This document shows, piece by piece, positions 22,662-64,000 of a stretch of 64,000 bases of DNA. Below the pieces are notes generated by a model. The model saw only the letters and a list, made by a program, of their open reading frames with translations. It had not been told where the DNA came from and ran no database searches. The translations under genes were made by a program, and so were the position numbers. How positions within the stretch are numbered: the stretch's first letter is position 1; each line of letters opens with the position of its first letter. Source of the stretch: Phallusia mammillata (taxonomy: Eukaryota); contig OZ281497.1 of assembly GCA_965637545.1 (NCBI GenBank), forward strand, positions 5,394,001-5,458,000, read 5' to 3'.

Positions 22662-25442
22662 ATGGAACTGAAAAAGAACGAACAAGAATTGACTGACCAG
22701 TTGAGAGGTTGTTGTAGCTTGGAAAATGGGTTTTACATCGAAGATAACACAGAGGAGTCTGCTGCCGCTATGATTGAGTTATCCCATTATTACTATGCAA
22801 TACTCAGTGAGGAAAAGCGGAACTACCTTTATGCCGCTGGCCTTCTTGCTGCAGCCAAAGTACGCCTTTCCAACGATAACGTTACAGACGGTTTTATGTT
22901 GAAATTGTGGAAAGAACTTCTGGCAGACAGCGGTGCTAAAAATACTGACATAGATTTGTTCTCAATTATAGCTGATTTAAAGGAAAAGGTTTCAAAAATG
23001 CGTAATCTTGTTGAAAAACAAATTGCAAATATTCCCTATGTTACAGAGAACGGAACTAAGTTCTTGCAGGAACAAAAAAAGATTGATGCTACAAAAAAAG
23101 TATTTATATACTGTAATGAAAACTACATAGATATTATGCGGTACATATCTGATGAAATCAGTCAAATTTTGTTCGACTCTCAGTTGCCTTGTGAGTTTGC
23201 TCACTTGGTTTTCGGGTCAGTGGCTCGTATGGAAGGCAGTCCGTTTTCTGATTTCGAAAACGCTATTATTATCTCAGAACGTACTGACGAGATCTTAGAA
23301 AAATTTCAATTCTACATCGTTTTGTTTCAGTTCGTGATTATCAATCTGGGGGAAACACCCTTACGTTTGTTGGGAATTCCCTTACTCAATGATTTCTACA
23401 GTGATCGCAAATCCAAGGATTGGTTCTATGACAAATTTACTTGTCTCGGTATCCGGTTTGACAGCAACATGCCCGCAGCTTCGGTGCATCCCCTCTCTCG
23501 AGACCCGACCGCCGACAAACCTTTCAAAGTTGAGCTGATCGGCACCGTGAACGAAATCGCGCGTTTCTTAGAACACGACCAAGCTCTGCGCAATGGATAT
23601 CACTTGGCCGATGTGCTGAGCCGATCGCGTTTGGTGGCAGGAAATTTCAAACTGCATGAAAAATACAGAACGCAGGTGGATGAGAAACTTCGCATGAGCC
23701 AAGACTGGATTCGGGAGCGGATAAAGAACTGCATGGAAACGCTTGATGGCTCCGATGAGCTGTGTAAGCCTTTCAGTAAGCAGAACATAAAGCTCCTTGT
23801 TTACAGGGGCATATCGGTTACCATCAGCCACTTGGGCAACTTGTTCGGTGTTCGTAGCTCGTCTTGTTTTGATATTGTGGACGAGCTGGTTGAAAGTGGT
23901 CGGTTGCCAGAAGAGGCCGGTCACAATCTCAAATACGCAGTGGCTTTAGCTGGAGAAATCCGACTAAAGATTTACATGGCAGCCGGTGAGCAAGTCCCAG
24001 AGACAGACTTGGTTACGAAGGAAGACGGAAAAGCAATGTCAGATATTATCAACGCTGTTGGGAACGTAAGCATTTGTGATTATTTTTACATTGCACAGAC
24101 GCTGTGGCGTGATTTACATCCATTCGTAATGCAAGAATCTACAAGTATATCATTCTCATCGGAACCATACGTCGACCCTGCTATGCGCTTTGCAATTCAA
24201 ACCATTTTGCTCGGTAAACCTGAAGAAAAAGAAAACTTTCGACTACTTAAACACAGCGAAGAACATGACCACTTTGACAAGATATCTTTTCTTCAAATTG
24301 CCAGAACACTCACCAAGCTTCTGTTGACAATATTTGAATCTTTCGATGCAGTGTTAAAGCATAAACAATCTTCCAAAGTTTTCCACACTAAAGAAGACCT
24401 CATTTGGAAAATCGAACACTTGAAAAAGATGTTTGCTACCTGCACCGCGCTGTTTGCTGATACTTACACTTCAACAAACGCCCCGCAATTAGGCCTTGAC
24501 ACAACGCTTTTCGCGGAGCAAAAATATGCTTATAAGGACTACAAGAGAGCTATGGAAAACCTGCAAACATTTCTAAAAGCATCGTTAAAAGATGTCCGGT
24601 TGATTCACCTGTTACCGTCTGTTGTCTACACTCTTCATTGCGTGGCAGATTTAGTGTCGTCCTTTAACCGAAAAATGACTTCGTGTTTAGAAAATCCGGC
24701 TACTTACAACACGGAGCAGTTGTTGAATGAACTTGACTACATTTCAACGGCGATTGATGGTTTTGTCATGGCATTACCGGAAAAAGAAGTAGATTTAAAA
24801 ATATATCTCGAAAGTCAAGAATTGGTTCGCCGAGTAGTTCTTGATTTCGATGATGGGTTGTTTAGCAACGAAGGTTTGGCAATCGGGATAAACAGATGGC
24901 TGGAACAAATCAAAGACATAAAGGCTATGATTTTAATTGCTGAACAAATCCCCATCTTTCATGAAAAGATCAACGGGGTGATGAAGTTCTTTTTCAACAT
25001 CAATAATTGGTCGTTTGTTATGCCTGCCTACAGCAAAGTTGTCAGAAGAGATTTAAAAATCCTCATCGCCGAAGTGAAATCCACGCGTGGTGAGCTGCTT
25101 TCCCGAAACGGCGATTATGCACTTGCCACGGAGGATTTGTGCACCTCTCATCGGATTTTAACTGAAAACCCCCGCGAGAAAGTTTGGTTTGAATTGAAAG
25201 TGGCGGCAAATATGCACAACATCGGTAAAAGCCTTTGCTCCTGTAAAAAATTCACTGAAGCACTGACATGGTTTCGTAAAGAGCTCGACCACAGGCTTAG
25301 TAAATTACCGACGAAAACTGGCAAAGAGCATTTGGGCCCGAACTATCACTTCCAAGCGAAATGTCTTCGTGCCATCGGAACAGATGAAGCTTTGGCGGAA
25401 GCTGACATTTACTTTGAGAACGAAATGGAGCTTTTTTTTTAA
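22662..25442 (+). CDS. NTase-TPR protein copy A1, intact, 926 aa, no introns in the CDS (DUF294/GlnD-GlnE-like nucleotidyltransferase with C-terminal TPR-like repeats)
   Basis: Uninterrupted ORF. VFGSVARMEGSPFSDFENAIII fits hGSx(10)DhEh (G185, S186, D197, E199), with GIRFDSNM (D267) downstream. A helical domain follows (IKLLVYR...L...G.L...LKYAVALAGEIRLKIYM), then TPR-like helices (STRGELLSRNGDYALATED; NMHNIGKSLCSCKKFTEALTWFRKEL). Confidence 0.9.
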   Translation: MELKKNEQELTDQLRGCCSLENGFYIEDNTEESAAAMIELSHYYYAILSEEKRNYLYAAGLLAAAKVRLSNDNVTDGFMLKLWKELLADSGAKNTDIDLFSIIADLKEKVSKMRNLVEKQIANIPYVTENGTKFLQEQKKIDATKKVFIYCNENYIDIMRYISDEISQILFDSQLPCEFAHLVFGSVARMEGSPFSDFENAIIISERTDEILEKFQFYIVLFQFVIINLGETPLRLLGIPLLNDFYSDRKSKDWFYDKFTCLGIRFDSNMPAASVHPLSRDPTADKPFKVELIGTVNEIARFLEHDQALRNGYHLADVLSRSRLVAGNFKLHEKYRTQVDEKLRMSQDWIRERIKNCMETLDGSDELCKPFSKQNIKLLVYRGISVTISHLGNLFGVRSSSCFDIVDELVESGRLPEEAGHNLKYAVALAGEIRLKIYMAAGEQVPETDLVTKEDGKAMSDIINAVGNVSICDYFYIAQTLWRDLHPFVMQESTSISFSSEPYVDPAMRFAIQTILLGKPEEKENFRLLKHSEEHDHFDKISFLQIARTLTKLLLTIFESFDAVLKHKQSSKVFHTKEDLIWKIEHLKKMFATCTALFADTYTSTNAPQLGLDTTLFAEQKYAYKDYKRAMENLQTFLKASLKDVRLIHLLPSVVYTLHCVADLVSSFNRKMTSCLENPATYNTEQLLNELDYISTAIDGFVMALPEKEVDLKIYLESQELVRRVVLDFDDGLFSNEGLAIGINRWLEQIKDIKAMILIAEQIPIFHEKINGVMKFFFNINNWSFVMPAYSKVVRRDLKILIAEVKSTRGELLSRNGDYALATEDLCTSHRILTENPREKVWFELKVAANMHNIGKSLCSCKKFTEALTWFRKELDHRLSKLPTKTGKEHLGPNYHFQAKCLRAIGTDEALAEADIYFENEMELFF

Positions 25443-25472
25443 AACTTCACTGAAGAAAACTCCGCTTTTAAA

Positions 25473-25602
25473 CACGTGTTTTACGTTTTGTGCTGTTACA
25501 CGTGTTTTACGTTTTGTGCTGTTACACGTGTTTTACGCTTTGTGCTGTTACACGTGTTTTACGCTTTGTGCTGTTACATGTGTTTTACGCTTTGTGCTGT
25601 TA
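25473..25602 (+). repeat. 26-bp minisatellite, 5 units, just after the A1 stop
   Basis: Unit cacgtgttttacg(c/t)tttgtgctgtta; 130 bp = 5 x 26. Confidence 0.95.
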
Positions 25603-26760
25603 GGAGATTAGAAAGTTTTCAGCAAGATGCAGTTTTTTTGAAAAAATCATGACATCGTTAGTGCTCTAATTTCGTTATTTGTGATCCGAAGTAGTTTCAC
25701 AATCACATTGAAAGTTTACATGACCACACCACAATACAGCCAAATATAGTTTTGTGTGCAAAGCTTTTAGTGTGTAAAGTGTGTACTGTTAACAAATATA
25801 TAGTGTTATATTATATGCCCTGGCAAGTTGAAAAACAATGGTCTAAACTTCAAAACGCTTGACTCTATTTATTGACTTTTATCCTTGGTGCAAAAAATGT
25901 CACCGTGTATATAAAGTATTTAAGTTGTATTGATTTGAAAATTAATCATTATTTGCTATGAGATGACTTTTGCGATTTCCATTGAAAAGCGTTTTGAGGA
26001 CATGATCAGTGGAAAAGTGACTACTTTTTTGTTCTTCGGTACCGTATCTCTATTACAACCAACTTTTGATTGTATATGCTGGTGCTTTTAGCGTTTTAGC
26101 TTAGGTGTGTTCTGCCTTCGAATAGATTTGCACAACTGAATTGTTTTTCACCAGGAATCTGACCATTGTAGCTTAATTTGTCGAGTTTAATCACAAGTAA
26201 TTAGTCAATCGATTATTGTCTATATAGCTGTTTTTCTGTTACATGTTGAAAAATTCGCAATCTGTCTTAATATGTTCGTCTACAACGGCTATAGCTTTTC
26301 GCTTTTTGATATTATACAAAGTTTATCAGAAAGAATCGGGAGAGATTTTGATCAACTTTCCCAGACAGACTACAACAGGAATTGTTTCTGCGCTGCAAGC
26401 AGTAGGCTTAAAGCTGTACTGTACTCCCCAAACAAGTATGGTGTGTAAAACGTATCAAAGCAAGTCTTCCATTTTACCACCTCGATGGCGTTGCGAATAA
26501 ACATTCTCATTCCAATTTCCGTGCATATCTCGGGCTAGTTTAACCCGATGTAACAATTTCGCAAACAAGATTGGAAGTCCAACCAATATGACCCGCGTCG
26601 GCGGTGACTTTCACTGTCCACTCTATGCATGGTTTAAGACAGTCGATCGCATCTTCGTATAACTTTAAAATGACCACAGCATGAGATTTGAAGTCTACAA
26701 CAGAGTTATAAGTCGGGCCGGGCTTTTTGGGCCGGGTTGCTGTCTGGTGTTTGTCTAGAC

Positions 26761-27072
26761 CAGTGGTTCTTAACCTTTTTTCTGTTGTTACCCACAAAAT
26801 TACCCCTTTTTAGAAAAACATCACCTAATATAGCTTGCAATCCAAAATAAACCCACAGAAAAACAAAGTCATTATTTATTGTACATTTAAAGGTTCATTT
26901 CAAATGCAGTTAATGGGAAGGGTGATACTGCTTTTTAGCTACTAAGCATGTAAATCTGATTATTATGATTATCAAGAATCTAAAGATAACTATAACAGAA
27001 AATCTATGTTACCCCTTTTAAAATGCCAAATTACCCCTTTGGGGGTAATTACCCACAGGTTAAGAACCACTG
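26761..27072. mobile_element. hAT-type MITE, 312 bp, present only in unit 1
   Basis: TIR cagtggttcttaacc / ggttaagaaccactg; 8-bp TSD gtctagac at 26753-26760 and 27073-27080. The matching sites near 39290 and 51915 lack the element. Confidence 0.92.
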
Positions 27073-27523
27073 GTCTAGACTGAATTTTAACAATCATGTA
27101 AACATCACACTTCGTGTACAGCATTTATTGTCATAAATCCTCGCGGTCAAGTGGCTAAAGATACGTGGACAAGACGCTACACGACATCAAACCGGATACA
27201 TACGTAAAACAACGGTAAAAAACACATACACACGGCACACTTTAACACCACATGTTTGTTCGCAGTACACACTTTGCACACTAACAACTTGAGCATAGTT
27301 GAATAAATTTCTTTTCGATTTTATTGTTTGTAAAACTGCTTTGGTTAACAACTTAGGCCAAATTAGACTTCTAAAGTTCCCTTGCACACCCGTATTTTTC
27401 GCAAGACTAAACATGAATTCTCCAAAAACTACTTTTTCGCTGAACACTTGTTATTATCTCACGACACCATGGATATGATCTTATTTGATATTTCAATGAA
27501 AATGGTATCTTGTCGATGGTATG

Positions 27524-30304
27524 TTACAACAAAAACAACTCCATTTCGCTTTCAATGTAGATGTCAGCTCCCGCCAAAGCTTCATCTGTTCCGATGGCAC
27601 GAAGACATTTCGCTTGAAAGTGATAGTTAGGGCCCAAATGCTCTTTGCCAGTTTTCGTCGGCAATTTACTAAGCCTGTGGTCAAGCTCTTTGCGAAACCA
27701 TGTTAGTGCTTCAGTGAATTTTTCGCAGGAGCAAAGGCTTTTACCGATGTTGTGCATATTTTCTGCCACTTTTAATCTAAACCAATCTTTTTCGCGTGAG
27801 ATTTCAGTTAAAATCCGATGAGCGGTGCACAAATCCTCCGTGGCAAGTACATACTCGCCGTTTCGGGAAAGCAGCTCACCGCGCGTGGATTTCACTTCGG
27901 CGATGAGGATTTTCAAATCCCTTTTGACAACTTTACTGTAGACAGGCATAATAAACGACCAATTATTGATGTCGAAAAAGAACTTCATCATTTTGTTGAC
28001 CTTTTCATGAAAGATGGGAATCTGTTCAGCAATCAAAATCATAGCCTTTATGCTTTTAATTAGTTGCAGCCATCTGTTTATCCCGATTGCAAAACTTTCG
28101 CTGCTAAACAACCCATCTTTTATATCACCAACGACTCGGCGAACAAATTCCTGACTTTCGGCATATATTTTCAAATCTACTTCTTTTTCCGGTAATGTCA
28201 TGACAAAACCATCAATCGCTGTTGAAATGTCGTCAAGTTCATTCAACAACTGCTCCGTGTTGTTAGTATCCGAATTTTCTAAACACGAATCCATTTTTCG
28301 GTTAAAAGCCGACACTAAATCCGGCACGCAATGAAGAGTGTATACAACAGACGGTAACAGGTAAATAAACCTGACATCCTTCAACGATGCTTTGAGAAAC
28401 GTTTGTAGGTTTTCCATGGCATTCTTATAGTTCCTGTAAGCACCTTTTTGCTCCGCGAAAAGCTTTTTGTCAAGGCTCTGGTGAGGGGCTGTTGAAGTAT
28501 ACGTTTCAGCGAACAGCGTAGTGCAGGCAGCAAACATCTTTTTCAAGTTTTCGATTTTCCAAATGAGGTCTTCTTCAGTGTGGAAAAGTTTGGAAGCTTG
28601 TTTATGCTTTAACACTGCATCGAAAGATTCAAATATTGTTAACAGATGCTTGGTGCCTGTTCTGGCAATTTGAAGAAAAGATATCTTGTCAAAGTGGTCA
28701 TGCTCTGTGTTCTCTTTCAGTCGTTGAAAGTTTCCCCTTTCTCCGGGTTTACCGAGCAGATTGGTTTGAATCGCCAAGCGCATTGCAGGGTCGATGGCCC
28801 TTTCTGATGAAAAGGATATACTTGAAGATTCTTGCATTACAAATGGATGTAAATCACGCCACAGCGTCTGTGCAATATAAAAATGATCACAAATGCTCAC
28901 GTTGCCAACAGCGCTGATAATATCCGACATTTCTTTTCCGTCTTCGTTCGTAACCAAGTCTGTCTCTGGGACTTGCTTACCGGCTGCCATGTAAATCTTT
29001 AGTCGGATTTCTCCAGCTACAGCGACTGCGTATTTGAGATTGTGACCGGCCTCTACCGGCAATCGACCACTTTCAACCATCTCGTCCACAATATCAAAAC
29101 AAGACGAGCTACGAACACCGAACAAATTGCCCAAGTGGCTGATGGTCACCGATATGCCTCTGTAAACAAGGAGCTTTATGTTTCGTTTACTGAAAGGTGT
29201 ACATAGCTCATCGGCGCCATCAAGCGTTTCCATGCAGTTCTTTATCCGTTCCCGAATCCAGTCTTTGCTCGTGCGAAGTTTCTCATCCACCTGCGTCCTG
29301 TATTCCTCATGCAGTTTGAAACTTCCTGCCACCAAACGCGATCGGCTCAGTACATCGGCCAGGTGATATCCATTGCGCAGAGCTTGGTCGTGTTCTACGA
29401 AACGTGCGATTTCGTTCACGGTGCCTATCAGCTCAACTTTGAAAGGTTTGTCGGCGGTCGGGTCTCTCGAGAGGGGATGCACCGAAGCTGCGGGCATGTT
29501 GCTGTTAAACCGGACGCCGAGACAAGTAAATTTGTCGTAAAACCAATCCTTGGATTTGCGATCACTGTAGAAATCATTGAGCAAAGGAATTCCCAGCAAG
29601 CGTATGGGTGTTTCTCCTAAGTTGATAATCACGAATTGAAACAAAACAATGTAGAATCGAAATTGTTCTAAGATCTCGTCAGTACGTTCTGAGATAATGA
29701 TGGCATTTTCGAAATCAGAAAACGGACTGCCTTCCATACGAGCCACTGACCCGAAAACCAAGTGAGCAAACTCACAGGGTAACTGAGAGTCGAACAAAAT
29801 GTTACTGATTTCACAAGATATGTACCGCATAATATCTATGTAGTTTTCATTACAGTATATAAATACTTTTTTTGTAGCGTCAATCTTTTTTTGTTCCTGC
29901 AAGAACTTATTTTCTTTCTCTTTAACTTTGGGAATATCAGCAATTTGTTTTTCAACAAGCTTTCGCATTTTCGAAACTTTCTCCTTTAACTCAGCTACAA
30001 TTGTGAATAAACCAACCTCGGTATTTTTAGCACCGCTTTCTGCCAGAAGTTCTTTCCACAATCTTAACATGAAACCGTCTGTGACGTCATCGTTGGAAAG
30101 ACGTACTTTGGATGCGGCAAGAAGGCCAGCGGCGTAAAGGTAGTTCCGCTTTTCCTCACTGCGTATTGTGTAGTAATAATGAGACAATTCGATCATAGCG
30201 GCAGCAGACTCTCTTGTGTTATCTTCGATGTAAAACCCATTTTCCAAGTAACAACAACCTCTCAACTGGTCAGCCAATTCTTGTCCGGTCTTGTTTGGTT
30301 CCAT
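27524..30304 (-). CDS. NTase-TPR protein copy B1, intact, 926 aa; Asn at candidate catalytic position 267
   Basis: Uninterrupted ORF colinear with A1, with the same GS...DFE motif. It reads GVRFNSNM where the other copies covering this region read RFDSNM (AAC vs GAC near 29505). Confidence 0.9.
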   Translation of the reverse strand: MEPNKTGQELADQLRGCCYLENGFYIEDNTRESAAAMIELSHYYYTIRSEEKRNYLYAAGLLAASKVRLSNDDVTDGFMLRLWKELLAESGAKNTEVGLFTIVAELKEKVSKMRKLVEKQIADIPKVKEKENKFLQEQKKIDATKKVFIYCNENYIDIMRYISCEISNILFDSQLPCEFAHLVFGSVARMEGSPFSDFENAIIISERTDEILEQFRFYIVLFQFVIINLGETPIRLLGIPLLNDFYSDRKSKDWFYDKFTCLGVRFNSNMPAASVHPLSRDPTADKPFKVELIGTVNEIARFVEHDQALRNGYHLADVLSRSRLVAGSFKLHEEYRTQVDEKLRTSKDWIRERIKNCMETLDGADELCTPFSKRNIKLLVYRGISVTISHLGNLFGVRSSSCFDIVDEMVESGRLPVEAGHNLKYAVAVAGEIRLKIYMAAGKQVPETDLVTNEDGKEMSDIISAVGNVSICDHFYIAQTLWRDLHPFVMQESSSISFSSERAIDPAMRLAIQTNLLGKPGERGNFQRLKENTEHDHFDKISFLQIARTGTKHLLTIFESFDAVLKHKQASKLFHTEEDLIWKIENLKKMFAACTTLFAETYTSTAPHQSLDKKLFAEQKGAYRNYKNAMENLQTFLKASLKDVRFIYLLPSVVYTLHCVPDLVSAFNRKMDSCLENSDTNNTEQLLNELDDISTAIDGFVMTLPEKEVDLKIYAESQEFVRRVVGDIKDGLFSSESFAIGINRWLQLIKSIKAMILIAEQIPIFHEKVNKMMKFFFDINNWSFIMPVYSKVVKRDLKILIAEVKSTRGELLSRNGEYVLATEDLCTAHRILTEISREKDWFRLKVAENMHNIGKSLCSCEKFTEALTWFRKELDHRLSKLPTKTGKEHLGPNYHFQAKCLRAIGTDEALAGADIYIESEMELFLL

Positions 30305-31007
30305 AGTTTGAACATTCGGTTAACAAACTGCTAGACACAAGTATTCGCCTAAGCTTCGGTCGAAGGACGTGCAAGGGTAAATTACTGTTTTTGTTTATTG
30401 CTGAAAAAGAAAAACCACATTTACTTTCAATGTTAAATCACAGTGTATATTCCAATTTAATTCTACATTTCATCTTCAGATTTCAGGTTCGAATTTGATT
30501 ACCAATGAGTTAAGAATACAGTCTTACATTAACAACAGTGGACGGTAAGACGGGTCGCACCTGTCCCTACTATATATTAGTTATGTCTTTTCGTTTGAAA
30601 GCCAGATTGCTAATAGTACTACATCAACAAACTTATGTGATAAATATTGTAGACGTATAGTTATTAGTTATTACACAGTTTACCTGTAAATTTTTTACAT
30701 TTTTTTACTAGGGGTTGTTTCGAAGTTTGTTGTTAAAGTTCAAAATTCTACTCTTGTCTATCTACAATTTCCTGTAACCAAACTAAAACAACATCGTTAT
30801 TAAACATTTGCGAGTAGCACCATTACAATGCAATGCTAGCTGACTTGGGATGTCTTTCCTACAACTTTTGATATTTTGTTTCGACACTATATCTTATCTG
30901 TCAACTTCGGAAACGAAACCTATACTAAACAAGTCTTTACAACTTCAGTGCCGGTTTAAACGCCTATAAAGAACAGAAACTTGTGGTTTGAGGTTCCCTC
31001 TGCCTTT

Positions 31008-31053
31008 ACACAGCCGTCACGAATTCCCTCTGATGAATTCGTGACGGCTGTGT
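31008..31053. repeat. Perfect 19-bp inverted repeat with 8-nt loop, upstream of the B copies (also 43143-43188 and 59442-59487)
   Basis: acacagccgtcacgaattc-cctctgat-gaattcgtgacggctgtgt. Confidence 0.9.
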
Positions 31054-33074
31054 TGTGCGAAGCGTCTTGCCTCGAGTTTCGTGTTTTCGTTCTGTAACAA
31101 ACTTTTCTTTCCCATTTCCTGTCACATTATTCAGCACTCAAGGCAACAATAGTGCAGTATTTACACAGCTCAATACGTGAAAGTACCTAAACGTTGTATT
31201 TAAACGAGTCTTTTTGCGTTGACAAGTAAACTCAAAAAAGTCTATTGTTGTAATGTTATTGAAAGCCAAAAAAATAACACCAATGTGTAAGGGGAAAAGC
31301 TCATGAATAGGTGAATGGGTTTTGGCGATTGGAACAGTTTTTCCCAACATTGTTAGGTTGAGACACACTATAACACTACATATTTATTCATTGCTAACCC
31401 ATTGCACAATAAAAACTTTAATATAATAAAATATATACTTTTTAACTTAATTGTGGTTATGAAATTGCCTTGGTTAACAACTAATGCCCAAATTGGACTT
31501 ATAACGTTCCCTTCCACACCAGCTTTTTGTCAGGAAACAATAGATTGGTTTTTCATAAACAATCTTCGCTAAACACTTGCTAATCGGTGAAGCTTGTGCT
31601 ATGCGAAGTGTCCTGCCTGTAGTTTCGTATTTTTGTGCTGCAACAGAAATGTCTTCAGATTGCGTGTGATTAGGTGACGCAAAATTCGAGGTCGATACCG
31701 AAAGTATAGGTCCGAAGCCCGGCCCGAAACCGAATCGTTTTTAGGAAGCCCCTTTAGGTCCGAAAGTTTGATTGACAGGCCTCTCCATAAAAGCCTACAA
31801 AAGTACTATAGTACGTATACTGTATATAATATATTTAAAAACGGCGTTTTAGGGCTGTTGGGCATTGGATTAAGTTCAGCAACTGGCTGCTAAGTTGGGT
31901 AATTTTATCTGAAAAAACAAAAGCCGAACCCGACCCAAAAAGCCTGGCCCGACTTACAGTTCTGCTTCAAACTGCATGAGGAATACAGGATTCAGGCGGA
32001 CAGCAGCAGCAGCATTATTATTTTTATTGATTTAAATGGATTTGTGTAACTAAACTTTTATTTAACAGGTATCGGATCACGGTTAGTTAGTTTGTCGAGT
32101 TTAATCACTGGCAATAAATCAACCGATCATTATCCTCATTGCGATCAATTCATCTTCTTCTGTCACAAATCCACACTTTACAATATAAGTTAATAATACT
32201 TTACAAATACACCACAAAAGTTGAAACGGTTTGCAAACCAAAATAAAATGTGAAGATCAAGTAAATACAACACGACACCGAGTAAAAAGTCTACTTATAA
32301 ATTTAATCTAATTCAAGGCGCTTGAAGTTATGGGAAAGCAACTAATATTTTGCCTTAACACATTAAATATTCGTGCCGTAAGGAAATTTTTCCAAACCAC
32401 TGCATCGGCTTTAAACGTAGTTTGGTAGCTTCAACTGGTATTTGGAAATAGTTTGTCACTGGAAAGTTGCTATCATTGTTGCCCCCAAAAACCTAAAAAT
32501 ACAAAGTTTTTAAATCAACTCCAAATGTTAATGTTTTAATGTGTTTTGGTTCTTACTGGATTTCCGTCGTTGTTAATAGCATTTCCCCATACACTATCCT
32601 TGTCCATGTACAAAATCTCGAAGGACGTAACATATTCCAAATGGTTGTTCCGTCCTTGCGTTATAACACCAGTAATAAGGGTAAGATTGTTCAAAGCCAC
32701 TTCAATCCATTGGTTTGCATCAGCTACGAAAAGTCATAGTATTCTATTTACAACACAGAAAAGACTAGTTCCGACAATTGGCATTTAGTACATTGTTGTA
32801 TGTAGATGCCGGGATTAAAATCAGACTTTGACTTCATGAATGAAACTTGAATTTTTCACTGACTTTGATTTAACTTTGTTCAAACTGCACGGATTCTTAA
32901 AGAATGAAACAGATTGGTGTTTGACTCTATTTTAATGTTTAGAAGTTTTTCAGCTCTGATTAGATCATTTTTTTCTGGTGGAGTATGAAATCGGGACGCT
33001 CCGATGTTCGAATTCCAAAAAAGTTCTGTTAAGTTTTGTGCATGGATCAACGCGCCCGTTCGGCCAAGTTCCAG

Positions 33075-33612
33075 ATTGCGTGGCAGATTTTGTGTCGTCC
33101 TTCAGTCAAAAAATGGCTTCGTGTTTAGAAAATCAGGATACTTGCAACACGGAGCAGTTGTTGATTGAACTTGACGACATTTCAACGGCGATTGATGGTT
33201 TTGTCGTGACATTGCCAGAGAAAGAAGTAGATTTGAAAATATATGTCGAAAGTCAAGAATTTGTTCGCCGAGTCGTTGGTGATATAGATGATGGGTTGTT
33301 TAGCAACGCAGGTTTTGAAAAGGGGATAAACAGATGGCTGGAACAAATCAAAAACATGAAGGCTATGATTTTGATTGCTGAACAGATTCCCATCTTTCAT
33401 GAACAGGTCAACGGGGTGATGAAGATTTTTTTCAACATCAGTTTCGCAAAGAGTTTGACCACAGGCTTAGTAAATTACCAACGAAAACTGGCAAAGAGCA
33501 TTTGGGCCCAAACTATCACTTTCAAGCGAAATGTCTTCGTGCCATCGGAACAGATGAAGCTTTGGCGGAAGCTGACATTTACACTGAAAACGAAATGGAG
33601 TTGTTTTTGTGA
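33075..33612 (+). pseudogene. Copy C1: 3'-only NTase-TPR fragment with ~268-nt internal deletion
   Basis: Homology starts at CVADFVSSF and the NTase domain is absent. The join ttcaacatca|gtttcgcaaa removes most of the TPR region and shifts the frame. Confidence 0.85.
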
Positions 33613-35139
33613 GATCATAAAATCATACCATCGACCTAAAACAATCATTTTGTTAAACCAGTTTTTTACCTTTTGAGTAGTGAGAGAATATAGCACTTGT
33701 TTAGCGAAAACATTGTTATTGAAAAACTCACCTGTTTTCTTGGGTTCAAGGGAACGTTATAAAAGTCCAAATTGGTCCTGGTTGTTAACCAAAGCAGTTA
33801 CAAAACCACAACCAAGTCAAAAAGTACATATTTTATTATGTTTAATTTTTTGTGTGCAAAGTGTGTGCTGTGAACAAATGTGTAGTGTTAAAGTGTGTCG
33901 CAACTTAAAAATGTTGGGACAACTGTTCAAATAGCTAAAACGCTTTAATCTATTCATTTAATTTCCCCCTTTCACCTTAGTGTAGTTGTTTCTTTGCTTT
34001 CAAAACTCCAACGTTTTTGCAAAATATACATATTTTGTCGACAGTAGTTTATCTGTAGTTGTGTTCATTCCCAGGGTTGTCGTATTCACGAACTAAAAAA
34101 AACAACAATTGACTTTTTAATTACTTTTCAACGCAAAGCAACTCGTTAAATAAGACGTTTGAATACTTTCACGTATTGAGCTGTGCAAATTCTGCATTAT
34201 TGTCGACGTGACTGCTGAATAATGTGGCACACACCTTTACAAGTCCATAAACAAATACGACGTCCATATGGAAATTAGAATAAAAAGTTTGCGTCACCTT
34301 ATCACACGCAATCTGAAGACATTTATGTTACAGCACGAAAACACCAAACTGGAGACAGGACACTTCGCATAGCACAAGCGTCACGATTTCATCACCGCCA
34401 GTCGCTATTCAATGAAGCGCTACGAAGGCAGAGGGAACCTCAAAACCACAGGTTTCGGTTCTCAAGCAGTCAGGCATGGCGCTGAAGTTGAAAAGGCTTG
34501 TTCAGTATAGGTTTCGTTTGCGAAGTTGGCAGATAAGATATGGTGTAGAAACAAAATATCAAAAGTTGTAGGAAAGACATGACAAGGCAGCTTGCAATGC
34601 ATTTTAATGGTGCTGCACGTAAATACTCAATAAACCAAGTAGTTTTAGCGGTTTGCTTAACATGAAATTATACATAGACAGGAATAGATTTCGAACCTTA
34701 ACAACAAACTTCTAAACAACACCTCGGGTGTATGGAAAATTATCAAGTGTACGTTGAAATACCTGAACGTCTATGAAATTTGTCACACAGATTTGTTAAT
34801 GTAGTATTATTAGCAATCCGGCCTTTGAATGAAAAGACACAACTAACACAGAGTAGGGACAGGTGCGTCTTAGTGTCCACTCTTGTCCATGTAAGACTAT
34901 ATTCTAAACCAATTGTTATTGGAATTCGAACCTGCAGTTTCGGTTTCGATTGATTTAGCTTGAAGTATGAAATGTAGAATTAAGTTGGAATGTAAACTTA
35001 GCTTTAACTTTGAAAGTAAATACGGTTTATCTTTTTCAGCAGGAAACAAAAACAGTAATTTACTCTTGCACGACCTTCGCCCACAGCTTATTGTGAGGAC
35101 ATTTCTGTACAGTGGTTTTGCTATTTGAATGTTAAAACT

Positions 35140-52286: not shown

Positions 52287-53359
52287 TCACAAAAACAACT
52301 CCATTTCGCTTTCAATGTAGATGTCAGCTTCCGCCAAAGCTTCATCTGTTCCGATGGCACGAAGACATTTCGCTTGAAAGTGATAGTTCGGGCCCAAATG
52401 CTCTTTGTCAGTTTTATGCGGTAATTTACTAAGCCTGTGGTCAAGCTCTTTGCGAAACCATGTTAGTGCTTCAGTGAATTTTTTACAGGAGCAAAGGCTT
52501 TTACCGATGTTGTGCATATTTTCTGCCACTTTTAATCTAAACCAATCTTTTTTGCGTGAGATTTCAGTTAAAATCTGATGAGCGCAGCACAAATCCTCCG
52601 TGGCAAGTACATAATCGCCGTTTCGGGAAAGCAGCTCACCGCGTGTGGATTTCACTTCGGCGATGAGGATTTTCAAATCCCTTCTGACAACTTTGCTGTA
52701 GGTAGGCATCACAAACGACCAGTTATTGATGTCGAAAAAGAACTTCATCACCTTGTTGACCTTTTGATGGAAGATGGGGATTTGTTCAGCAATTAAAATC
52801 ATAGCCTTTACGTTTTTGATTTGTTCCAGCCATCTGTTTATCCCCATTGCCAAACCTCCGTTGCTAAACAACCCATTATCTATACTATGAACTACTTGGT
52901 GAGTAAATTCTTGACTTTCGACATATATTTTCAAATCTACTTCTTTCTCTGGCAATGTCATAATAAAACCATCAATCGCCGTTGAAATGTCGTCAAGTTC
53001 ATGCAGAAATCGCTCCGTATTGTTGGCATCCGTATTTTCTAAATAAGAAGCCATTTTTCGGTTAAAAGACGACACGAAATCCGCCACGCAATGAAGAGTG
53101 TAGACAACAGACGGTAACAGACTAATCAACCTAACATCCTTTAACGATGATTTAAAAAATGTTTGTAGGTTTTCCATAGCTCTCTTGTAGTCCCTGTAAG
53201 CATCTTTCTACTCCGCGAAAAGCGTTATGTCAAGGTCATGAGGGGCGTTTGTTGAAGTGTACGTATCAGCAAACAGCGCAGTGCAGACAGCAAACATCCT
53301 TTTCAAGTGTTCGATTTTCCAAATGAGGTCTTCTTTAGTGTGGAAAACTTTGGAAGCTT
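52287..53359 (-). pseudogene. Copy B3, 3' part (separated from its 5' part by a transposon)
   Basis: The C-terminal 296 aa are identical to B2. Homology stops at ttggaagctt|cactgtaaa (53359/53360). Confidence 0.9.
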
Positions 53360-56300
53360 CACTGTAAATTGAAATGGTGGAAAACAAAGGGTGGGGAAAA
53401 TAAAAGGTGGTATGATCCACCTATTGGGGTGGTACAGCTTAAAAGGTGTAATTTCACACCATTTTGAGACCAAATTTCCACCCGTCCTATAGTATTGGTG
53501 TAAATACCAACCCTCAGTTCTCACAAGGGTGGGTATATGCGCAAAGGTATTTTAAAAGACGCGGTAACACATTGCTAATCATTTGAAACAATTTGGGTAC
53601 TGCAATAACTTGCAATTAGGCGGTCAATACGCGATTTAGACCATTTGGTGCTAGGATTTCTCTTCCGTTTTCTTTGCGGTCAAGGTTTGGAAATATGTTC
53701 AAGCCGTGGAAAAACGACATTGGAGGTTTGGAATTGTATTTACTCTAGTATAAATGATTACTATACTGACAATTAAATAAACCAGGTAGTATATTTGTAT
53801 TTAAACAACGCATCTTTTTACAACAAACCTTCCTATAACTGCAGTCTATGTAACGTAAATTGAAAAGTTTTTCAGAAGTTTAAGGCAGATGTTAGTATCC
53901 TACATGTTACTTTTACGTTCTAAGAGCGAAATCCGTAGCAGCAATGTATGGCAGTCGCGACTTAGAACTGTAACCAAACGAGCCAGTGGCATTTTTTGAA
54001 AAAAAAACATGCACATTTATCACGCTGGATCTCATAAACGCGACGTATGCACGCTATACAGTATACATCATAATATTAGGGGAGTTGGTAGAAATACGAG
54101 TATAATTAAAATGAACAAATCACCGGTGAAAGAGTTTTCATTGTTAGTGAAGCTTTAGCAACACAGCAAGATATAGATTGTCGCATAACAATCCCAATTG
54201 TTACATCAGACAGAATTCTGGGATCGCCCAAGCTGAGTTGCAGGGGCATGTTTCTTTTATTATGACGTTTGCGGTAAGCCACACCCAGAGTTCAGCTTGC
54301 GCAGACGCCACGTTTTGTGCCGATTTGGAGGATTTGGAGTTTGGATACGGATCGGAAACAGTTTTAAGGTTTGTTGGTTATACTTTTTGTTTACCTTGCA
54401 AACTGACCAATAACTGGATGCATATTAAAGTTTTTAAAATGTATGGAGTTGCGTAGTAGACCTGTGTATCTCTAACCTATTTTATTGCGTGACCAAGTCA
54501 ACGTTTTTTTAGAAAAAAATGGCCCACTTTCTCATCAGTATGGCTAGCAGGTCTTGATAATTGGTACATCAGCACTTTACAAACTACTATATGGCCCACA
54601 AGCTAATTAGTTAAGAAACACTGGTGCAGACAATACTGCTTGTCCATTAGTTTTTGGTTTATTTTATATGCATTTGGTAATTGTTGGTCTTGTGGATTGG
54701 TTGTGTTAAGTATAAAAATACCTTTTAAAATTATATGTATCAGCAATATAGATTCAACTTGTAGGTTCATTAAAAGTGAGTTGTGTATGTTGTTTTTCTT
54801 GCAACTGATAAAGTATGTACATTTGAAGACAAATCTCAGATCAAAATGAAAAAACAATGTAAGCTGGAATTTTATGTCCTCATGAAACTGAAACGTGTGT
54901 TTGCCAATGCATTTCTAAAAAAAACTCCTTTAATATTTAAGAAATGAACATCATCATGTGACTGTGCCGCCATTGTGTTGCACAATAAACTTTTGCTCCA
55001 GAAAGTATTCTTCACCAAACCAAAGGGTGTCAAATATATTTTACATTTCGGTTTAAATGGTGGTGTTATAGTGGTTTCGTAAAATATGACATGTTGAATT
55101 TCCAAACGTTTCAGTGAGTGCTTATGTAATGTGCAAGAGCATTCTCTGAAATGTTTAGATAATAATTTAGGTTGCTTTTTATCTCCTGTATCATCCTTGT
55201 TACCGTCATTAAGGTTATTTTTGTTCGCAGATTAAAAAGTAAATATGGAATATCATGTGACCTGTGGTGAGAGAAAAGTGATATTAACCTGTATATCAAA
55301 ACTGGATGTGACCAATCAAATTGAGACTACATTCAATATCACCCATCCGTTCTCAATTCAGCTTTACTCACAAACGTTTAATGACTGGGTGGATGTAGAT
55401 AATCTAACAGATTTGCCAGAAAGTGGCAAACTTCTTGTCAAAGGTATTTGCATGTAATACAATACACCAGTTAATGTTTTACACTCATGTTGATTGTGAC
55501 AATATGTCTTAATGTTGTTTGTATTTGTACAATTTTGGCTTAGAAATATGCGATTAAATAATTTTCAGATTGTTTACCGGAGATACAAAATGATAATGAG
55601 ACTGCAACACATCTTTCATCCTCATCTTCACTTTCAACTACATCCCCCTCAGTAGAAACTGATGGATGGTTGGTTAGATACAAGCTTCCAAAACTCATTG
55701 GTGATGCTTTGGAAGATTGCAACTATCCAAGCAAACTAACCAACAAAATTAGGAGCAAAATTGTTCAACTCGTCTGTGATTCAATTTTACCACATAATAT
55801 GTAAGTGTGATATAGTTTGTTTGAAAATAGCTTGTAACGTACACATTAAATATTACTAATACTGTAAAAATTAATTACAGGTACCCATCACCCTTACAAA
55901 TGAGAACAGTATTAATGGAATTAGTAAAGGCATATCCAGTATTGCAAGATCAAAACAGTAGCAGTCCAATAGTAAGTAGGTGCGAGATTTCTGCCCAGCA
56001 CAGTACTGATTTTGGTTTGTTTTGTAGAGCACATGGGTTTGTAGTTTGCGACAAAGATTTAAAGACATAAGAAGACCCCTTCATTCAGATGTGCAAATTG
56101 CTGCTATGAAAATAAAGTATGGCGGTCGAGAAAGGCAGGATTCTTCAAGGAGGTTGTTTAAAGATGTAAGTATGTACATATATTTATTAAAAGTTTTCTA
56201 GGTTTAGCAAGTTAGATAGGTTTATTTTCAGTTAATCACCAAAAGTGAGGTTATGTTCCAAATTGTGTGTTTGCATACAGAGTTTTGAAGATGAGGAATC

Positions 56301-57366
56301 CGTTGCACTGCATTCTAAAATAGCACAATTGGAGCTGGCCAAACCACATCCAAGTCATGATTTAATAGAAGACTGCCATAAGTGTACATTCGAGTTTTGG
56401 AGAAATATCATTGCAAGAGGTGCAGCAAGTAATGACATTTTAGACCATGCAGTTTCCAACACTTCATGAAATCAATTTGGTAGGTGGATCTTTTCACATT
56501 ATATTTAATGTACCCATTTTAATGTAATAACCATTTTATTGAAATTGGAATGTCCAGTGATTTGTCTGTTTCAGATATTTTTGGCAACAGAATTGATTCT
56601 TAAAGTAGATGTATTGCAAACATTCATGGAAAAATTTGGTGACCAAAAATGCTGCAGAGACTGGAGAATCTTATTAAACCTAATCATAATCACCAAGTAC
56701 ATTTCACAGGTATATATTAATTTAAATTTCATGTTTTAAAATATGTGTACGGTTTAAGCAATGGGTGATGTACCAGTAATATTTTTATTTTAAATTGTAA
56801 TTGACTTTGAAATGATGCTATTTTGCACAAATGCTGTGGGTTATAACTTGTTTTATAATATGCAGGAGGATGAAAGAATACTTGGTGTTTGTTGGTGGAA
56901 AGAAGTTATGTGTTGCACCTAATTTGCCACAAGCCGTAGTTGCAATGATCTGCAGCTATTGGGTGTTCGACATTTGCTTTCCGAAACAATTGGTCAAGTC
57001 TCTACAACTTTTCTGCTGTATTCTAAATTTACCACTGAAAAATCGTCACATTGGTGTACAGCGTGTTTCAAACAAGCTGTAAGCGAAGTGCAAAGTAAAT
57101 TTTGTGAAACCTGTTTTGCAAATAAATTTTGTGAAACCCTGTTGTACTGGAACACCTTTGCAGGTGGAGATACCGACACCCTATAGTGGTGCAGACAGCT
57201 GAGTGGTGGTTGCCACCAATGGGGGCAAATTCACACCTACTATGGTGGAGTTCACAGGTGGAACTTACCACCTTCGTTATCTAAAGGTGGGAAGCAACTC
57301 CACCCTAGGTTGGAGTTTGTGGACCACCAATTTTGGTGTTAGTTTCCACGACTACCATTTACAGTG
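53360..57366. mobile_element. CACTG-ended DNA transposon (EnSpm/CACTA-like, CMC superfamily), 4007 bp, inserted in B3
   Basis: Termini CACTGTAAAT / ATTTACAGTG; 2-bp TSD tt. Removing the element and one tt restores ggaagcttgtttatgc (KHKQASK). Subterminal ggtgg/ccacc repeats at both ends. No transposase recognised inside. Confidence 0.85.
55245..57082 (+). CDS. Multi-exon accessory protein inside the transposon (TnpA-like / transposon-associated type)
   Basis: GT-AG exons in compatible phase: MEYHVTCGERKVIL...FSIQLYSQTFNDWVDVDNLTDLPESGKLLVK / D...KIRSKIVQLVCDSI / YPSPLQMRTVLMELVKAYPVLQD / ... / AVVAMICSYWVFDICFPKQLVKSLQLF...*. The middle exons were not fully resolved. Confidence 0.6.
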
Positions 57367-58749
57367 TTGTTTATGCTTTAACACTGCATCGAAAGATTCA
57401 AATATTGTTAACAGGAGCTTGGTGAGTGTTCTGGCAATTTGAAGAAAAGATATCTTGTCAAAGTGGTCATGTTCTGTGTTCTCTTTCAGTCGTTGAAAGT
57501 TTCCACTTTCTCCAGGTTCAACCAGCTCGTCCACAATATCAAAACAGGACGAGCTACGAACACCGAACAAGTTGCCCAAATGGCTGATGGTCACCGATAT
57601 GCCTCTGTAAACAAGGAGCTTTATGTTTCGTTTACTGAAAGGTGTACATAGCTCATCGGCGCCATCAAGCGTTTCCATGCAGTTCTTTATCCGCTCCCGA
57701 ATCCAGTCTTTGCTCGTGCGAAGTTTCTCATCCACCTGCGTCCTGTATTCCTCATGCAGTTTGAAATTTTCTGCCACCAAACGGGATCGGCTCAGTACAT
57801 CGGCCAGGTGATATCCATTGCGCAGAGCTTGGTCGTGTTCTACGAAACGTGCGATTTCGTTCACGGTGCCTATCAGCTCAACTTTGAAAGGTTTGTCGGC
57901 GGTCGGGTCTCTCGAGAGGGGATGCACCGAAGCTGCGGGCATGTTGCTGTCAAACCGGACGCCGAGACAAGTAAATTTGTCGTAAAACCAATCCTTGGAT
58001 TTGCGATCACTGTAGAAATCATTGAGCAAAGGAATTCCCAGCAAGCGTATGGGTGTTTCTCCTAAGTTGATAATCACGAATTGAAACAAAACAATGTAGA
58101 ATCGAAATTTTTCTAAGATCTCGTCACTGCGTTCTGAGATAATGATGGCATTTTCGAAATCAGAAAACGGACTGCCTTCCATACGAGCCACTGACCCGAA
58201 AACCAAGTGAGCAAACTCACAGGGCAACTGAGAGTCGAACAAAATGTTACTGATTTCACAAGATATGTACCGCATAATATCTATGTAGTTTTCATTACAG
58301 TATATAAATACTTTTTTTGTAGCGTCAATCTTTTTTTGTTCCTGCAAGAACTTATTTTCTTTCTCTTTAACTTTGGGAATATCAGCAATTTGTTTTTCAA
58401 CAAGCTTTCGCATTTTCGAAACTTTCTCCTTTAACTCAGCTACAATTGTGAATAAACCAACCTCGGTATTTTTAGCACCGCTTTCTGCCAGAAGTTCTTT
58501 CCACAATCTTAACATGAAACCGTCTGTGACGTCATCGTTGGAAAGACGTACTTTGGATGCGGCAAGAAGGCCAGCGGCGTAAAGGTAGTTCCGCTTTTCC
58601 TCACTGCGTATTGTGTAGTAATAATGAGACAATTCGATCATAGCGGCAGCAGACTCTCTTGTGTTATCTTCGATGTAAAACCCATTTTCCAAGTAACAAC
58701 AACCTCTCAACTGGTCAGCCAATTTTTGTCCGGTCTTGTTTGGTTCCAT
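57367..58749 (-). pseudogene. Copy B3, 5' part, with a 324-nt in-frame deletion
   Basis: Reads MEPNKTG...NTase...IVDELVE|PGESGNF...VLKHKQ then enters the transposon. The 108 codons between VE and PG are missing compared with B2 (40886-41209). Confidence 0.9.
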
Positions 58750-60531: not shown

Positions 60532-60563
60532 GCAGTAGCAACAGCAGCAGCAGCAGCAGCAGC
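60532..60563 (+). repeat. Short (CAG)n microsatellite, longer in unit 3
   Basis: gcagtagcaacagcagcagcagcagcagcagc follows a ~110-bp segment absent from units 1 and 2, which have only about 4 repeats (~31998, ~44136). Confidence 0.7.
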
Positions 60564-61630: not shown

Positions 61631-62678
61631 ATTGCGTGGCAGATTTTGTGTCGTCCTTCAGTCAAAAAATGGCTTCGTGTTTAGAAAATCAGGATACTAG
61701 CAACACGGAGCAGTTGTTGATTGAACTTGACGACATTTCAACGGCGATTGATGGTTTTGTCGTGACATTGCCAGAGAAAAAAGTAGATTTGAAAATATAT
61801 GTCGAAAGTCAAGAATTTGTTCGCCGAGTCGTTGGTGATATAGATCAGTGATCGGCAACCGCCGGTCCGCGGCCCGGTACCGGTCCGCGAGGAGTTCGTT
61901 ACCGGGCCGTACAAATTTTCAGGTTAAATGCTATGAAACATTTTGCCCATATATCCCGGGAATGATAAACTAATTTATGCGTTTTTATTGCTGAATATTT
62001 GTAGTTTTTTGAAGACCGGTCCGCGATAAAATTTTAGGTTCAAAAACGGTCCGCCGTGCAAAAAGGTTGCCGACCCCTGATATAGATGATGGGTTGTTTA
62101 GCAACGAAGGTTTTGAAAAGGGGATAAACAGATGACTGGAACAAATCAAAGGCATAAAGGCTATGATTTTGATTGCTGAACAAATCCCCATCTTTCATGA
62201 AAAGGTCAACGGGGTGATGAAGATTTTTTTCAACATCAGCAATTGGTCGTTTATTATGCCTGCCTACAGCAAGGTTGTCAGAAGAGATTTGAAAATCCTC
62301 ATCGCCGAAGTGAAATCCACACGCGGTGAGCTGCTTTTCCGAAACGGGGATTATGTACTTGCCACGGAGGATTTGTGCACCGCTCATCGGATTAAAACTG
62401 AAAATTCTCGCGAGAAAGCTTGGTTTGAATTGAAACTGGCAGAAAATATGCACAACATCGGTAAAAGCCTTTGCTCATGTGAAAAATTCACTGAACCGCT
62501 AACATGGTTTCGCAAAGAGTTTGACCACAGGCTTAGTAAATTACCAACGAAAACTGGCAAAGAGCATTTGGGCCCAAACTATCACTTTCAAGCGAAATGT
62601 CTTCGTGCCATCGGAACAGATGAAGCTTTGGCGGAAGCTGACATTTACACTGAAAACGAAATGGAGTTGTTGTTGTGA
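61631..62678 (+). pseudogene. Copy C3: 3'-only fragment with the same hAT MITE as C2
   Basis: Nearly identical to C2. The 171-aa TPR-region ORF 62163-62678 is still open. Confidence 0.85.
61846..62079. mobile_element. hAT-type MITE, 234 bp, in C3 (same insertion site as in C2)
   Basis: Same TIRs; TSD atatagat at 61838-61845 and 62080-62087. Confidence 0.93.
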
Positions 62679-63363
62679 GATCATAAAATCATAAACTTAC
62701 CATCGACCTAAAACAATCATTTTGTTAAACCAGTTTTTTACCTTTTGAGTAGTGAGAGAATATAGCACTTGTTTAGCGAAAACATTGTTATTGAAAAACT
62801 CACCTGTTTTCTTGGGTTCAAGGGAACGTTATAAAAGTCCAAATTGGTCCTGGTTGTTAACCAAAGCAGTTACAAAACCACAACCAAGTTAAAAAGTACA
62901 TATTTTATTATGTTTAATTTTTTGTGTGCAAAGTGTGTGCTGTGAACAAATATGTAGTGTTAAAGTGTGTCGCAACTTAAAAATGTTGGGACAACTGTTC
63001 CAATTGCTAAAACGCTTTAATCTATTCATTTCATTTCCCCCTTTCACCTTAGTGTAGTTGTTTCTTTGCTTTCAAAACTCCAACGTTTTTTGCAAAATAT
63101 ACATATTTTGTCGACAGTAGTTTATCTGTAGTTGTGTTCATTCCCAGGGTTGTCGTATTCACGAACTAAAAAAAACAACAATAGACTTTTTAATTACTTT
63201 TCAACGCAAAGCAACTCGTTAAATAAGACGTTTGAATACTTTCACGTATTGAGCTGTGCAAATTCTGCATTATTGTCGACGTGACTGCTGAATAATGTGG
63301 CACACACCTTTACAAGTTCATAAACAAATACGACGTCCATATGGAAATTAGAATAAAAAGTTT

Positions 63364-64000
63364 GCGTCACCTTATCACACGCAATCTGAAGACATTTATG
63401 TTACAGCACGAAAACACCAAACTGGAGACAGGACACTTCGCATAGCACAAGCGTCACGATTTCATCACCGCCAGTCGCTATTCAATGAAGCGCTACGAAG
63501 GCAGAGGGAACCTCAAAACCACAGGTTTCGGTTCTCAAGCAGTCAGGCATGGCGCTGAAGTTGAAAAGGCTTGTTCAGTATAGGTTTCGTTTGCGAAGTT
63601 GGCAGATAAGATATGGTGTAGAAACAAAATATCAAAAGTTGTAGGAAAGACATGACAAGGCAGCTTGCAATGCATTTTAATGGTGCTGCACGTAAATACT
63701 CAATAAACCAACTTGTTTTAGCGGTTTGCTTAACATGAAATTATACATAGACAGGAATAGATTTCGAACCTTAACAACAAACTTCTAAACAACACCTCGG
63801 GTGTATGGAAAATTATCAAGTGTACGTTGAAATACCTGAACGTCTATGAAATTTGTCACACAGATTTGTTAATGTAGTATTATTAGCAATCCGGCCTTTG
63901 AATGAAAAGACACAACTAACACAGAGTAGGGACAGGTGCGTCTTAGTGTCCACTCTTGTCCATGTAAGACTATATTCTAAACCAATTGTTATTGGAATTC
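63364..64000 (+). promoter_or_regulatory. Upstream region of a probable fourth A copy whose ATG should lie ~210 bp past the window end
   Basis: Matches 34291-34927 and 46939-47575, which precede A2 and A3. Confidence 0.8.

Follow-up and report, generated by a model that had tools for sequence, protein, structure and literature searches.

What would a tandem cluster of genes that join a nucleotidyltransferase (NTase) to tetratricopeptide repeats (TPRs) be doing in the genome of a tunicate? The question is raised by a 64,000-nt stretch of Phallusia mammillata DNA (GenBank assembly GCA_965637545.1, contig OZ281497.1, positions 5,394,001 to 5,458,000 of the forward strand; hereafter, the window), for which an initial annotation had proposed an undescribed sensor or effector system, possibly immune. 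We suggest that the locus as a whole is best explained as a young array of NTase-TPR genes of the GlnE/DrrA fold, whose products would transfer a nucleoside monophosphate (NMP) to a protein. We give this reading a probability of about 0.55.

The fold of the enzyme part carries this reading. The product of A1, the first gene of the array, runs from N-terminal helices through a DUF294 NTase domain, a helical substrate-binding domain and a divergent helical region to C-terminal TPR-like repeats. A1 passes the Pfam cut-off for DUF294 (PF03445; 23.1 bits, cut-off 21, E = 7e-5). Among 30 aligned relatives, DUF294 is matched by all 30, DUF294_C by 10 and SidM_N by 8, and the amphioxus protein P0057 reaches E = 2e-10 on SidM_N. 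In an AlphaFold2 (AF2) model of A1 built on a 31-sequence alignment, the predicted local distance difference test (pLDDT) score is mostly 75 to 96 for residues 1 to 490, and residues 786 to 925 are also modeled confidently. The best solved matches of this model in Foldseek are DrrA (6yx5_B, E = 1.7e-8) and both halves of GlnE (1v4a and 3k7d), with E values ranging from 1.7e-8 to 1e-6, and 29 of the 30 Swiss-Prot model matches listed are GlnE, the remaining one being GlnD (query residues ~7 to 490). Superposition with VIA-align gave Z = 24.3 for DrrA, with 323 of 339 residues aligned (model residues 58 to 499 on chain residues 21 to 352), and Z = 19.7 and Z = 19.1 for the C-terminal and N-terminal domains of GlnE, respectively (PDB 3k7d, 1v4a). 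Judged from the model, residues ~58 to 499 are a complete GlnE/DrrA-type adenylyltransferase unit, in which a Pol-beta NTase core is followed by the helical substrate-binding domain (DUF294 and DUF294_C, respectively).

The catalytic residues are conserved well beyond the window. G185, S186, D197, E199, E231 and D257 are invariant across 30 to 31 relatives that share 22 to 40% identity, and exactly 11 residues separate G185 from D197, giving a G-X11-D-X-E motif that is also present in all six window copies that cover the region. The initial annotation had called a Pol-beta-superfamily NTase from an hGS...DxD/E signature; the DUF294 score, the invariant motif and the fold found in the structure search all bear this out. 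A profile of the N-terminal part of the family aligns its consensus GSLARkEiTPYSDfE with DrrA GSLAKAQATEYSDLD at E = 0.05, which is supportive only together with the fold match. Comparison of A1 with PDB sequences by phmmer returned no match. NCBIfam yielded nothing, PADLOC nothing meaningful, and Rfam no match in the window.

The C-terminal half is less uniform. Its end folds into about 3 to 6 TPR-like repeats that are homologous to the longer arrays of related proteins: hhalign pairs A1 residues ~725 to 900 with the TPR arrays of relatives (86.7% probability, E = 4e-6), and the three-repeat consensus TPR structure CTPR3 superposes over 104 of 104 residues at 1.8 Å on model residues 798 to 926 (VIA-align). 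The TPRs of KLC, LGN and PlcR match model residues 668 to 926 with Z of 15 to 17.7, in a class of helical repeats that gives a high background Z. An atlas search with residues 490 to 926 gave only weak TPR leads (≤0.88), a model of the isolated C-terminal half, built on 6 aligned sequences, was unusable (pLDDT 47.7), and a whole-length family profile searched against PDB was swamped by TPR matches. Residues ~490 to 785 are helical and specific to the subfamily, being shared only with a metagenomic protein, a Logan protein and one Clavelina protein. The TPR module that had been assigned to this half thus stands for the last ~130 to 260 residues only.

How is the array built? Copies were located by tblastn of A1 on the window and repeat units were defined by self-blastn. 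The features are as follows.

22488 to 34966, no strand: repeat unit 1 (A1, B1, C1), with the array edge at ~22488 (self-blastn)
22662 to 25442, + strand: A1, intact, 926 aa (open reading frame [ORF], Pfam PF03445, AF2 model)
23190 to 23273, + strand: catalytic stretch of A1, G185-S186-X10-D197-X-E199 (peptide identical in six copies)
25472 to 25602, 37950 to 38132 and 50598 to 50754, + strand: 26-bp minisatellite 3′ of the A-type stop (Tandem Repeats Finder [TRF])
27524 to 30304 (tblastn match from 27530), − strand: B1, intact inverted paralogue, 926 aa, tail-to-tail with A1 (ORF, tblastn)
33077 to 33606, + strand: C1, old truncated fragment, residues ~660 to 781 and 871 to 925 (tblastn)
35140 to 37917, to 38133 with the minisatellite tail, + strand: A2, full length with lesions (tblastn)
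39665 to 42442 (tblastn match from 39668), − strand: B2, full length with a premature stop (tblastn)
45216 to 46257, + strand: C2, truncated fragment, residues ~660 to 926 with breaks (tblastn)
47788 to 50763 (ORF 47773 to 50763), + strand: A3, open copy with the ancestral stop lost (ORF, tblastn)
52287 to 53359 (tblastn match 52290 to 53384), − strand: 3′ part of B3, residues ~566 to 926 (tblastn)
53360 to 57366, no strand: non-autonomous DNA transposon of 4,007 bp inside B3 (inverted repeat, empty sites)
57367 to 58749 (tblastn match 57358 to 58749), − strand: 5′ part of B3, residues 1 to ~565 (tblastn)
61633 to 62675, + strand: C3, truncated fragment (tblastn)

The A, B and C loci, nine in all and of one 926-aa family, agree with the count in the initial annotation, and its repeating A(+)/B(−)/C(+) pattern can be refined to three tandem copies of one ~12.1-kb unit. 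In each unit, two full copies, A (+) and the inverted B (−), are accompanied by a truncated fragment, C (+), and the units are 96 to 99% identical, non-coding DNA included (self-blastn). Units 2 and 3 are 98.9% identical across 7.3 kb of coding and non-coding DNA. Identity is 96.4% when the B segment of unit 1 is compared with that of unit 2, and A1 is 93 to 94% identical in DNA to A2 and A3 (22490 to 26751 versus 34967 to 39281, 92.9%; versus 47615 to 51903, 93.8%). Within a unit, A and B are an older inverted pair with 87 to 90% identity (self-blastn; 86.7% amino acid identity between B1 and A1). Their homology includes ~800 bp upstream of the ATG and ends exactly at the stop codon; the homology of A1 to the other copies ends 174 bp 5′ of its ATG. 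Unit homology spans ~22488 to base 64000, so that the window contains the start of the array but not its end, which had been claimed to lie further on; the segment 33441 to 34927 matches 62507 to 64000 at 98.9%, which marks the start of the next unit after C3. The region is a young tandem amplification in which a ~12.1-kb unit, made up of an inverted gene pair and a single old fragment, is present at least three times. The coding sequence (CDS) of every full copy is a single ORF, so the description of the genes as intron-free holds. A1, B1 and A3 are open, which matches the three copies described as intact except that A3 lacks its ancestral stop.

The array shows recent gene birth and death. 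In A2, a +7-bp/−7-bp pair shifts the frame across codons ~520 to 601; in B2, codon 105 has become a stop; and B3 has both a 4,007-bp element between codons 565 and 566 and an in-frame deletion of ~105 codons (~413 to 516). Fragments C1 to C3 all start at residue ~660, C2 and C3 share a break at ~728 to 730, and C1 carries a further deletion. Since C1 to C3 have the same truncation point, they go back to a single truncation event, which was passed on as the unit was duplicated, and the six independent lesions counted earlier reduce to about three recent ones (A2, B2 and B3) and one old one. The element in B3 has imperfect 24-nt terminal inverted repeats, which begin with CACTG and end with CAGTG, and an interior with no ORF longer than 100 aa. 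Its empty sites are found in B1 (about 28598 to 28600) and B2 (about 40736 to 40738), and comparison of filled and empty sites suggests a 2-bp TT target duplication. A3 no longer has the ancestral stop at ~50566, and its ORF extends by 66 codons through the 26-bp minisatellite, 5 to 7 copies of which lie directly 3′ of every A-type gene (TRF). A2 has the same stop loss with a read-through tail of 72 residues. Both tails are rich in Cys, Phe and Leu; A1 has kept its stop.

We estimated the ratio of nonsynonymous to synonymous substitution rates (dN/dS) pairwise by the Nei-Gojobori method (NG86). Between A and B lineages, dN/dS is 0.27 to 0.32 overall at dS of 0.17 to 0.25 (A1 versus B1, 0.28). 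The ratio is lowest in the catalytic core (codons 171 to 330; 0.07 to 0.17), similarly low in codons 331 to 500 (0.14 to 0.18) and higher in codons 501 to 700 (0.43 to 0.59). The copies are thus under purifying selection, the enzyme core above all, and their C-terminal half is relaxed. The four most variable 30-codon patches, picked post hoc, sit in the C-terminal half and reach dN/dS of 0.6 to 0.8 at most, so that calling the genes locally hypervariable overstated the case. The 28-aa catalytic stretch CEFAHLVFGSVARMEGSPFSDFENAIII is the same peptide in all six copies that cover the region, as first reported, and the 84 nt that encode it have 4 variable sites, all synonymous. Such an invariant motif is unremarkable for copies so alike, yet it is consistent with the low dN/dS of the core. 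Along the gene, dS varies strongly between pairs. In codons 201 to 260, it is 0.47 to 0.62 for A1 versus A3 and 0.16 to 0.25 for A3 versus B1, the reverse of most of the C-terminal half; these swings suggest gene conversion between A- and B-type copies.

What would such an enzyme do? DrrA, GlnE and GlnD attach AMP or UMP to protein Tyr residues through a G-X11-D-X-D motif and further carboxylates (PMC8097203). We propose that the Phallusia enzyme would, like them, move an NMP (AMP or UMP) from a nucleoside triphosphate to a protein target, at a side chain with a hydroxyl group, and that its variable helical and TPR part would select or sense a partner or ligand and so gate the activity. Protein NMPylation is the best-supported mechanism because the DrrA/GlnE-type unit is complete and its catalytic residues are conserved; as an activity predicted from fold and motif, we rate it at roughly even odds. 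Of the two products that the initial annotation had left open, the fold favors an NMP-modified protein, with DrrA, GlnE and GlnD as the best matches, over a nucleotide second messenger, for which cGAS-, OAS- or Mab21-like matches were lacking in Pfam and among the structure matches listed. The third and weakest step is that the proteins might act in a fast-evolving conflict or signaling pathway, possibly immunity. Such a role is suggested by lineage-specific expansion, gene birth and death, paralogue-rich contigs in other genomes, OTU or UBA domains (both linked to ubiquitin) in relatives, and the expansion of F-box(-OTU)-DUF294-TPR proteins in chlamydiae (PMC4209131). For immunity or allorecognition in particular, the case is circumstantial and consists of the genomic pattern.

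Several observations weigh against this proposal. With regard to catalysis, the motif ends in Glu rather than Asp, which the degenerate motif quoted in PMC8097203 permits, and E231 and D257 are candidates for the third metal-binding carboxylate by guess, as invariant acidic residues downstream in the sequence. The direction of the reaction and its acceptor are not fixed by the fold, given that the N-terminal domain of GlnE removes AMP with the same fold and that related NTases act on small molecules; the N-terminal family profile also gives weak matches to kanamycin NTase and the MNT antitoxin. With regard to the sensing part, residues 490 to 785 of the AF2 model are poor, and A1 does not reach the Pfam cut-offs for TPRs (TPR_12, 16.1 versus 30.1 bits; TPR_10, 13.9 versus 27.5 bits). 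With regard to the immune step, Pfam detects no Death, TIR, CARD or NACHT domain in A1, and there is no sign of positive selection: no diversifying selection was found on the recognition part, where dN/dS never convincingly exceeds 1, in a comparison of five sequences only, which has low power for positive selection.

The alternative that survives best shares the fold and differs in the reaction. The proteins could nucleotidylate a small molecule or a nucleic acid, or remove NMP as a deAMPylase or phosphorylase in the manner of the N-terminal domain of GlnE. That removing domain matches the model as well as the C-terminal one does (Z of 19.1 versus 19.7), the kanamycin NTase and MNT antitoxin matches at the motif level point the same way, and our literature search found no assigned activity for bacterial DUF294 proteins. 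We nevertheless regard this alternative as unlikely, because DrrA, which AMPylates proteins, gives both the highest score and the fullest coverage of any match, and because SidM_N is matched by 8 of the 30 relatives.

Somewhat less likely again is a sensor-enzyme of innate immunity or allorecognition, in which the TPR/helical part would bind a foreign or non-self ligand and the NTase would respond by releasing a second messenger made of nucleotides, like those of cGAS, cGLR, OAS and CD-NTases. The genomic pattern fits: the genes are clustered in tandem with rapid birth and death (three units, six broken loci), which had been read correctly from the outset; large lineage-specific expansions occur in sessile or marine invertebrates; and the variable patches fall in the C-terminal half. 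Against it, the fold is the one found in the GlnE/DrrA/GlnD clade of protein-modifying enzymes, every measurable dN/dS lies below 1, and A1 lacks Death, TIR and CARD domains. A cGAS- or OAS-like identity was rejected, as no match to cGAS, OAS, Mab21 or CD-NTase was found in Pfam, the 50 PDB entries listed, the Swiss-Prot models listed or PADLOC.

It is improbable that the array is an artifact of assembly, or a duplicated segment that has no function and is decaying, with open copies that are merely unbroken so far. Six of the nine loci are broken, units that are 96 to 99% identical are hard to assemble, and A1 lacks most of the upstream region common to the other copies. However, the dN/dS values of A and B lineages, lowest in the core, indicate long-term constraint, the catalytic residues are invariant in distant relatives, and the distinct lesions and 1 to 7% differences between units are unlike a simple collapse or duplication error.

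Is the family peculiar to Phallusia, and where does it come from? An exhaustive family search returned representatives of 1064 related clusters, of which 306 reach E < 1e-30, with a shared module that covers residues ~5 to 485. Relatives with a named source come from Branchiostoma (three taxa), Ciona, Phallusia, Clavelina and Owenia, i.e., from amphioxus, tunicates and an annelid, and other genomes also carry many paralogues on one contig. Domain combinations vary. P0144 of Owenia fusiformis combines OTU and DUF294 with a long TPR array, P0176 of P. mammillata combines UBA with DUF294, and P0057, from a Branchiostoma hybrid, has three DUF294-matching stretches in 2060 aa. The Clavelina gene is exactly 889 codons plus a stop, and relatives on large ENA contigs, one with hAT and CUB neighbors, are called as single ORFs. 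Because the coding regions of relatives are intronless too, the intron-free CDS is a trait of the family and not a peculiarity of this genome. In Clavelina lepadiformis (CAUIVY010000064.1, locus L001, 12670 to 12874), the tblastn alignment of A1 runs ~200 nt beyond the annotated stop of P0003, and the annotation of 889 aa may fall short of the ancestral C-terminal TPR part.

When 185,579 genomes of bacteria and archaea were scanned for the family motifs, 150 pattern sites matched, none of which was confirmed by tblastn. A profile search with the N-terminal module, in which the word prefilter excludes distant DUF294 proteins, recovered the same family only. Recent horizontal acquisition from bacteria is unsupported and, to our mind, very improbable: the intron-free CDS, the DUF294-TPR architecture in Neochlamydia (PMC4209131) and in a Chlamydiota cluster, and presumed bacterial proteins that have the whole 1 to 489 module at 20 to 23% identity (found by fold only) would fit it, whereas the motif scan gave no prokaryotic relative, matches with a named source are animal, the megabase-scale contigs look eukaryotic, amphioxus, tunicates and an annelid share the intronless family, and a putative splice acceptor upstream of the genes is conserved. 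On these grounds, any transfer would have to be ancient.

The putative acceptor is a polypyrimidine tract followed by CAG (TTTTTCTTTTTCAG) ~105 nt upstream of the ATG, kept in A1 (~22545 to 22560) and B1 (~30405 to 30420, − strand). It is probably a splice acceptor or a spliced-leader trans-splice acceptor, in which case the genes may carry a non-coding 5′ exon despite their intron-free CDS. Upstream of the array, window positions 1 to 22487 contain no ORF longer than 122 aa and no Pfam or Rfam match. An Arg/Ser/Lys-rich ORF at 19475 to 19804 (− strand) could represent one exon of a gene that encodes an RS domain.

Which characterized systems do the proteins resemble? The closest is DrrA/SidM of Legionella pneumophila (PDB 6yx5, 3nku; SidM_N PF20879), which shares the fold over nearly the whole AMPylation domain and the G-X11-D-X-[DE] motif with a closely similar local sequence, and relatives of A1 score on SidM_N. 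The two are only 12 to 13% identical, and DrrA is a secreted bacterial effector, whereas the window protein is encoded by an animal. The window protein also has helical and TPR regions instead of the guanine nucleotide exchange factor and phosphatidylinositol 4-phosphate-binding domains of DrrA, and its second carboxylate is Glu. With GlnE and GlnD, the protein has the arrangement of NTase and helical substrate-binding domain in common, but it is eukaryotic, has a single NTase unit instead of two, lacks HD and ACT domains and has no link to nitrogen regulation.

Similarity to bacterial DUF294/DUF294_C proteins (PF03445 and PF10335) extends to both domains, as A1 passes PF03445 and relatives match PF10335, and predicted folds match with TM scores, taken by the bacterial model, of 0.70 to 0.78. 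The sensor module differs, being TPR/helical in the window protein and usually a CBS or cyclic-nucleotide-binding domain in the bacterial proteins; a PAS domain is not present here either. In the NEX2 family of Neochlamydia (F-box[-OTU]-DUF294-TPR; Domman et al. 2014, PMC4209131), DUF294 is followed by C-terminal TPRs and the family is massively expanded, as here, and its combination of OTU, DUF294 and TPR recurs in Owenia P0144. In this comparison, made by description only, A1 differs in having no F-box (no Pfam match) or OTU, and NEX2 proteins are presumed host-directed bacterial effectors. FICD and SelO would share the predicted chemistry, protein NMPylation, while their folds (Fic and pseudokinase, respectively) are unrelated; FICD likewise pairs its catalytic domain with TPRs (PMC12409994).

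These comparisons bear on novelty. Our literature search found no paper on the animal family; bioRxiv 072470, considered as a DUF294 paper, was rejected because its domain is DUF2946. In databases, relatives already carry automatic names such as [quoted passage not shown] and "TTC28." The family was therefore rightly called undescribed with respect to the literature searched but not to databases: its domain content is not new to them, and its DrrA-like nature and biology are unexplored. In reviews from 2021 and 2025, FICD and SelO are the only endogenous metazoan AMPylases named, and the examples of the GlnE/DrrA fold, a metabolic regulator and a Legionella effector, are bacterial only (PMC8097203, PMC12409994). 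We speculate that the family could be a massively expanded third class of endogenous metazoan AMPylases or UMPylases in invertebrate chordates and some other marine animals, whose TPR/helical modules would sense pathogens or non-self. As an effector step of innate immunity or allorecognition, the enzymes would then NMPylate proteins of the invader or regulators of the host, for example small GTPases or members of the ubiquitin pathway. This extended proposal is doubtful in its entirety.

Animals carry hundreds of genes with the GlnE/DrrA fold, intact catalytic residues, purifying selection and protein-binding repeats, sometimes together with OTU or UBA domains. Should the immune reading fail, the analysis still provides a clean annotation of a large uncharacterized family and an account of how one array evolves. 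If the proteins are active, they would represent a new class of writers for eukaryotic NMPylation and would provide a link, open to direct testing, between nucleotide-transfer chemistry and the gene families that show lineage-specific expansion in tunicates and amphioxus.

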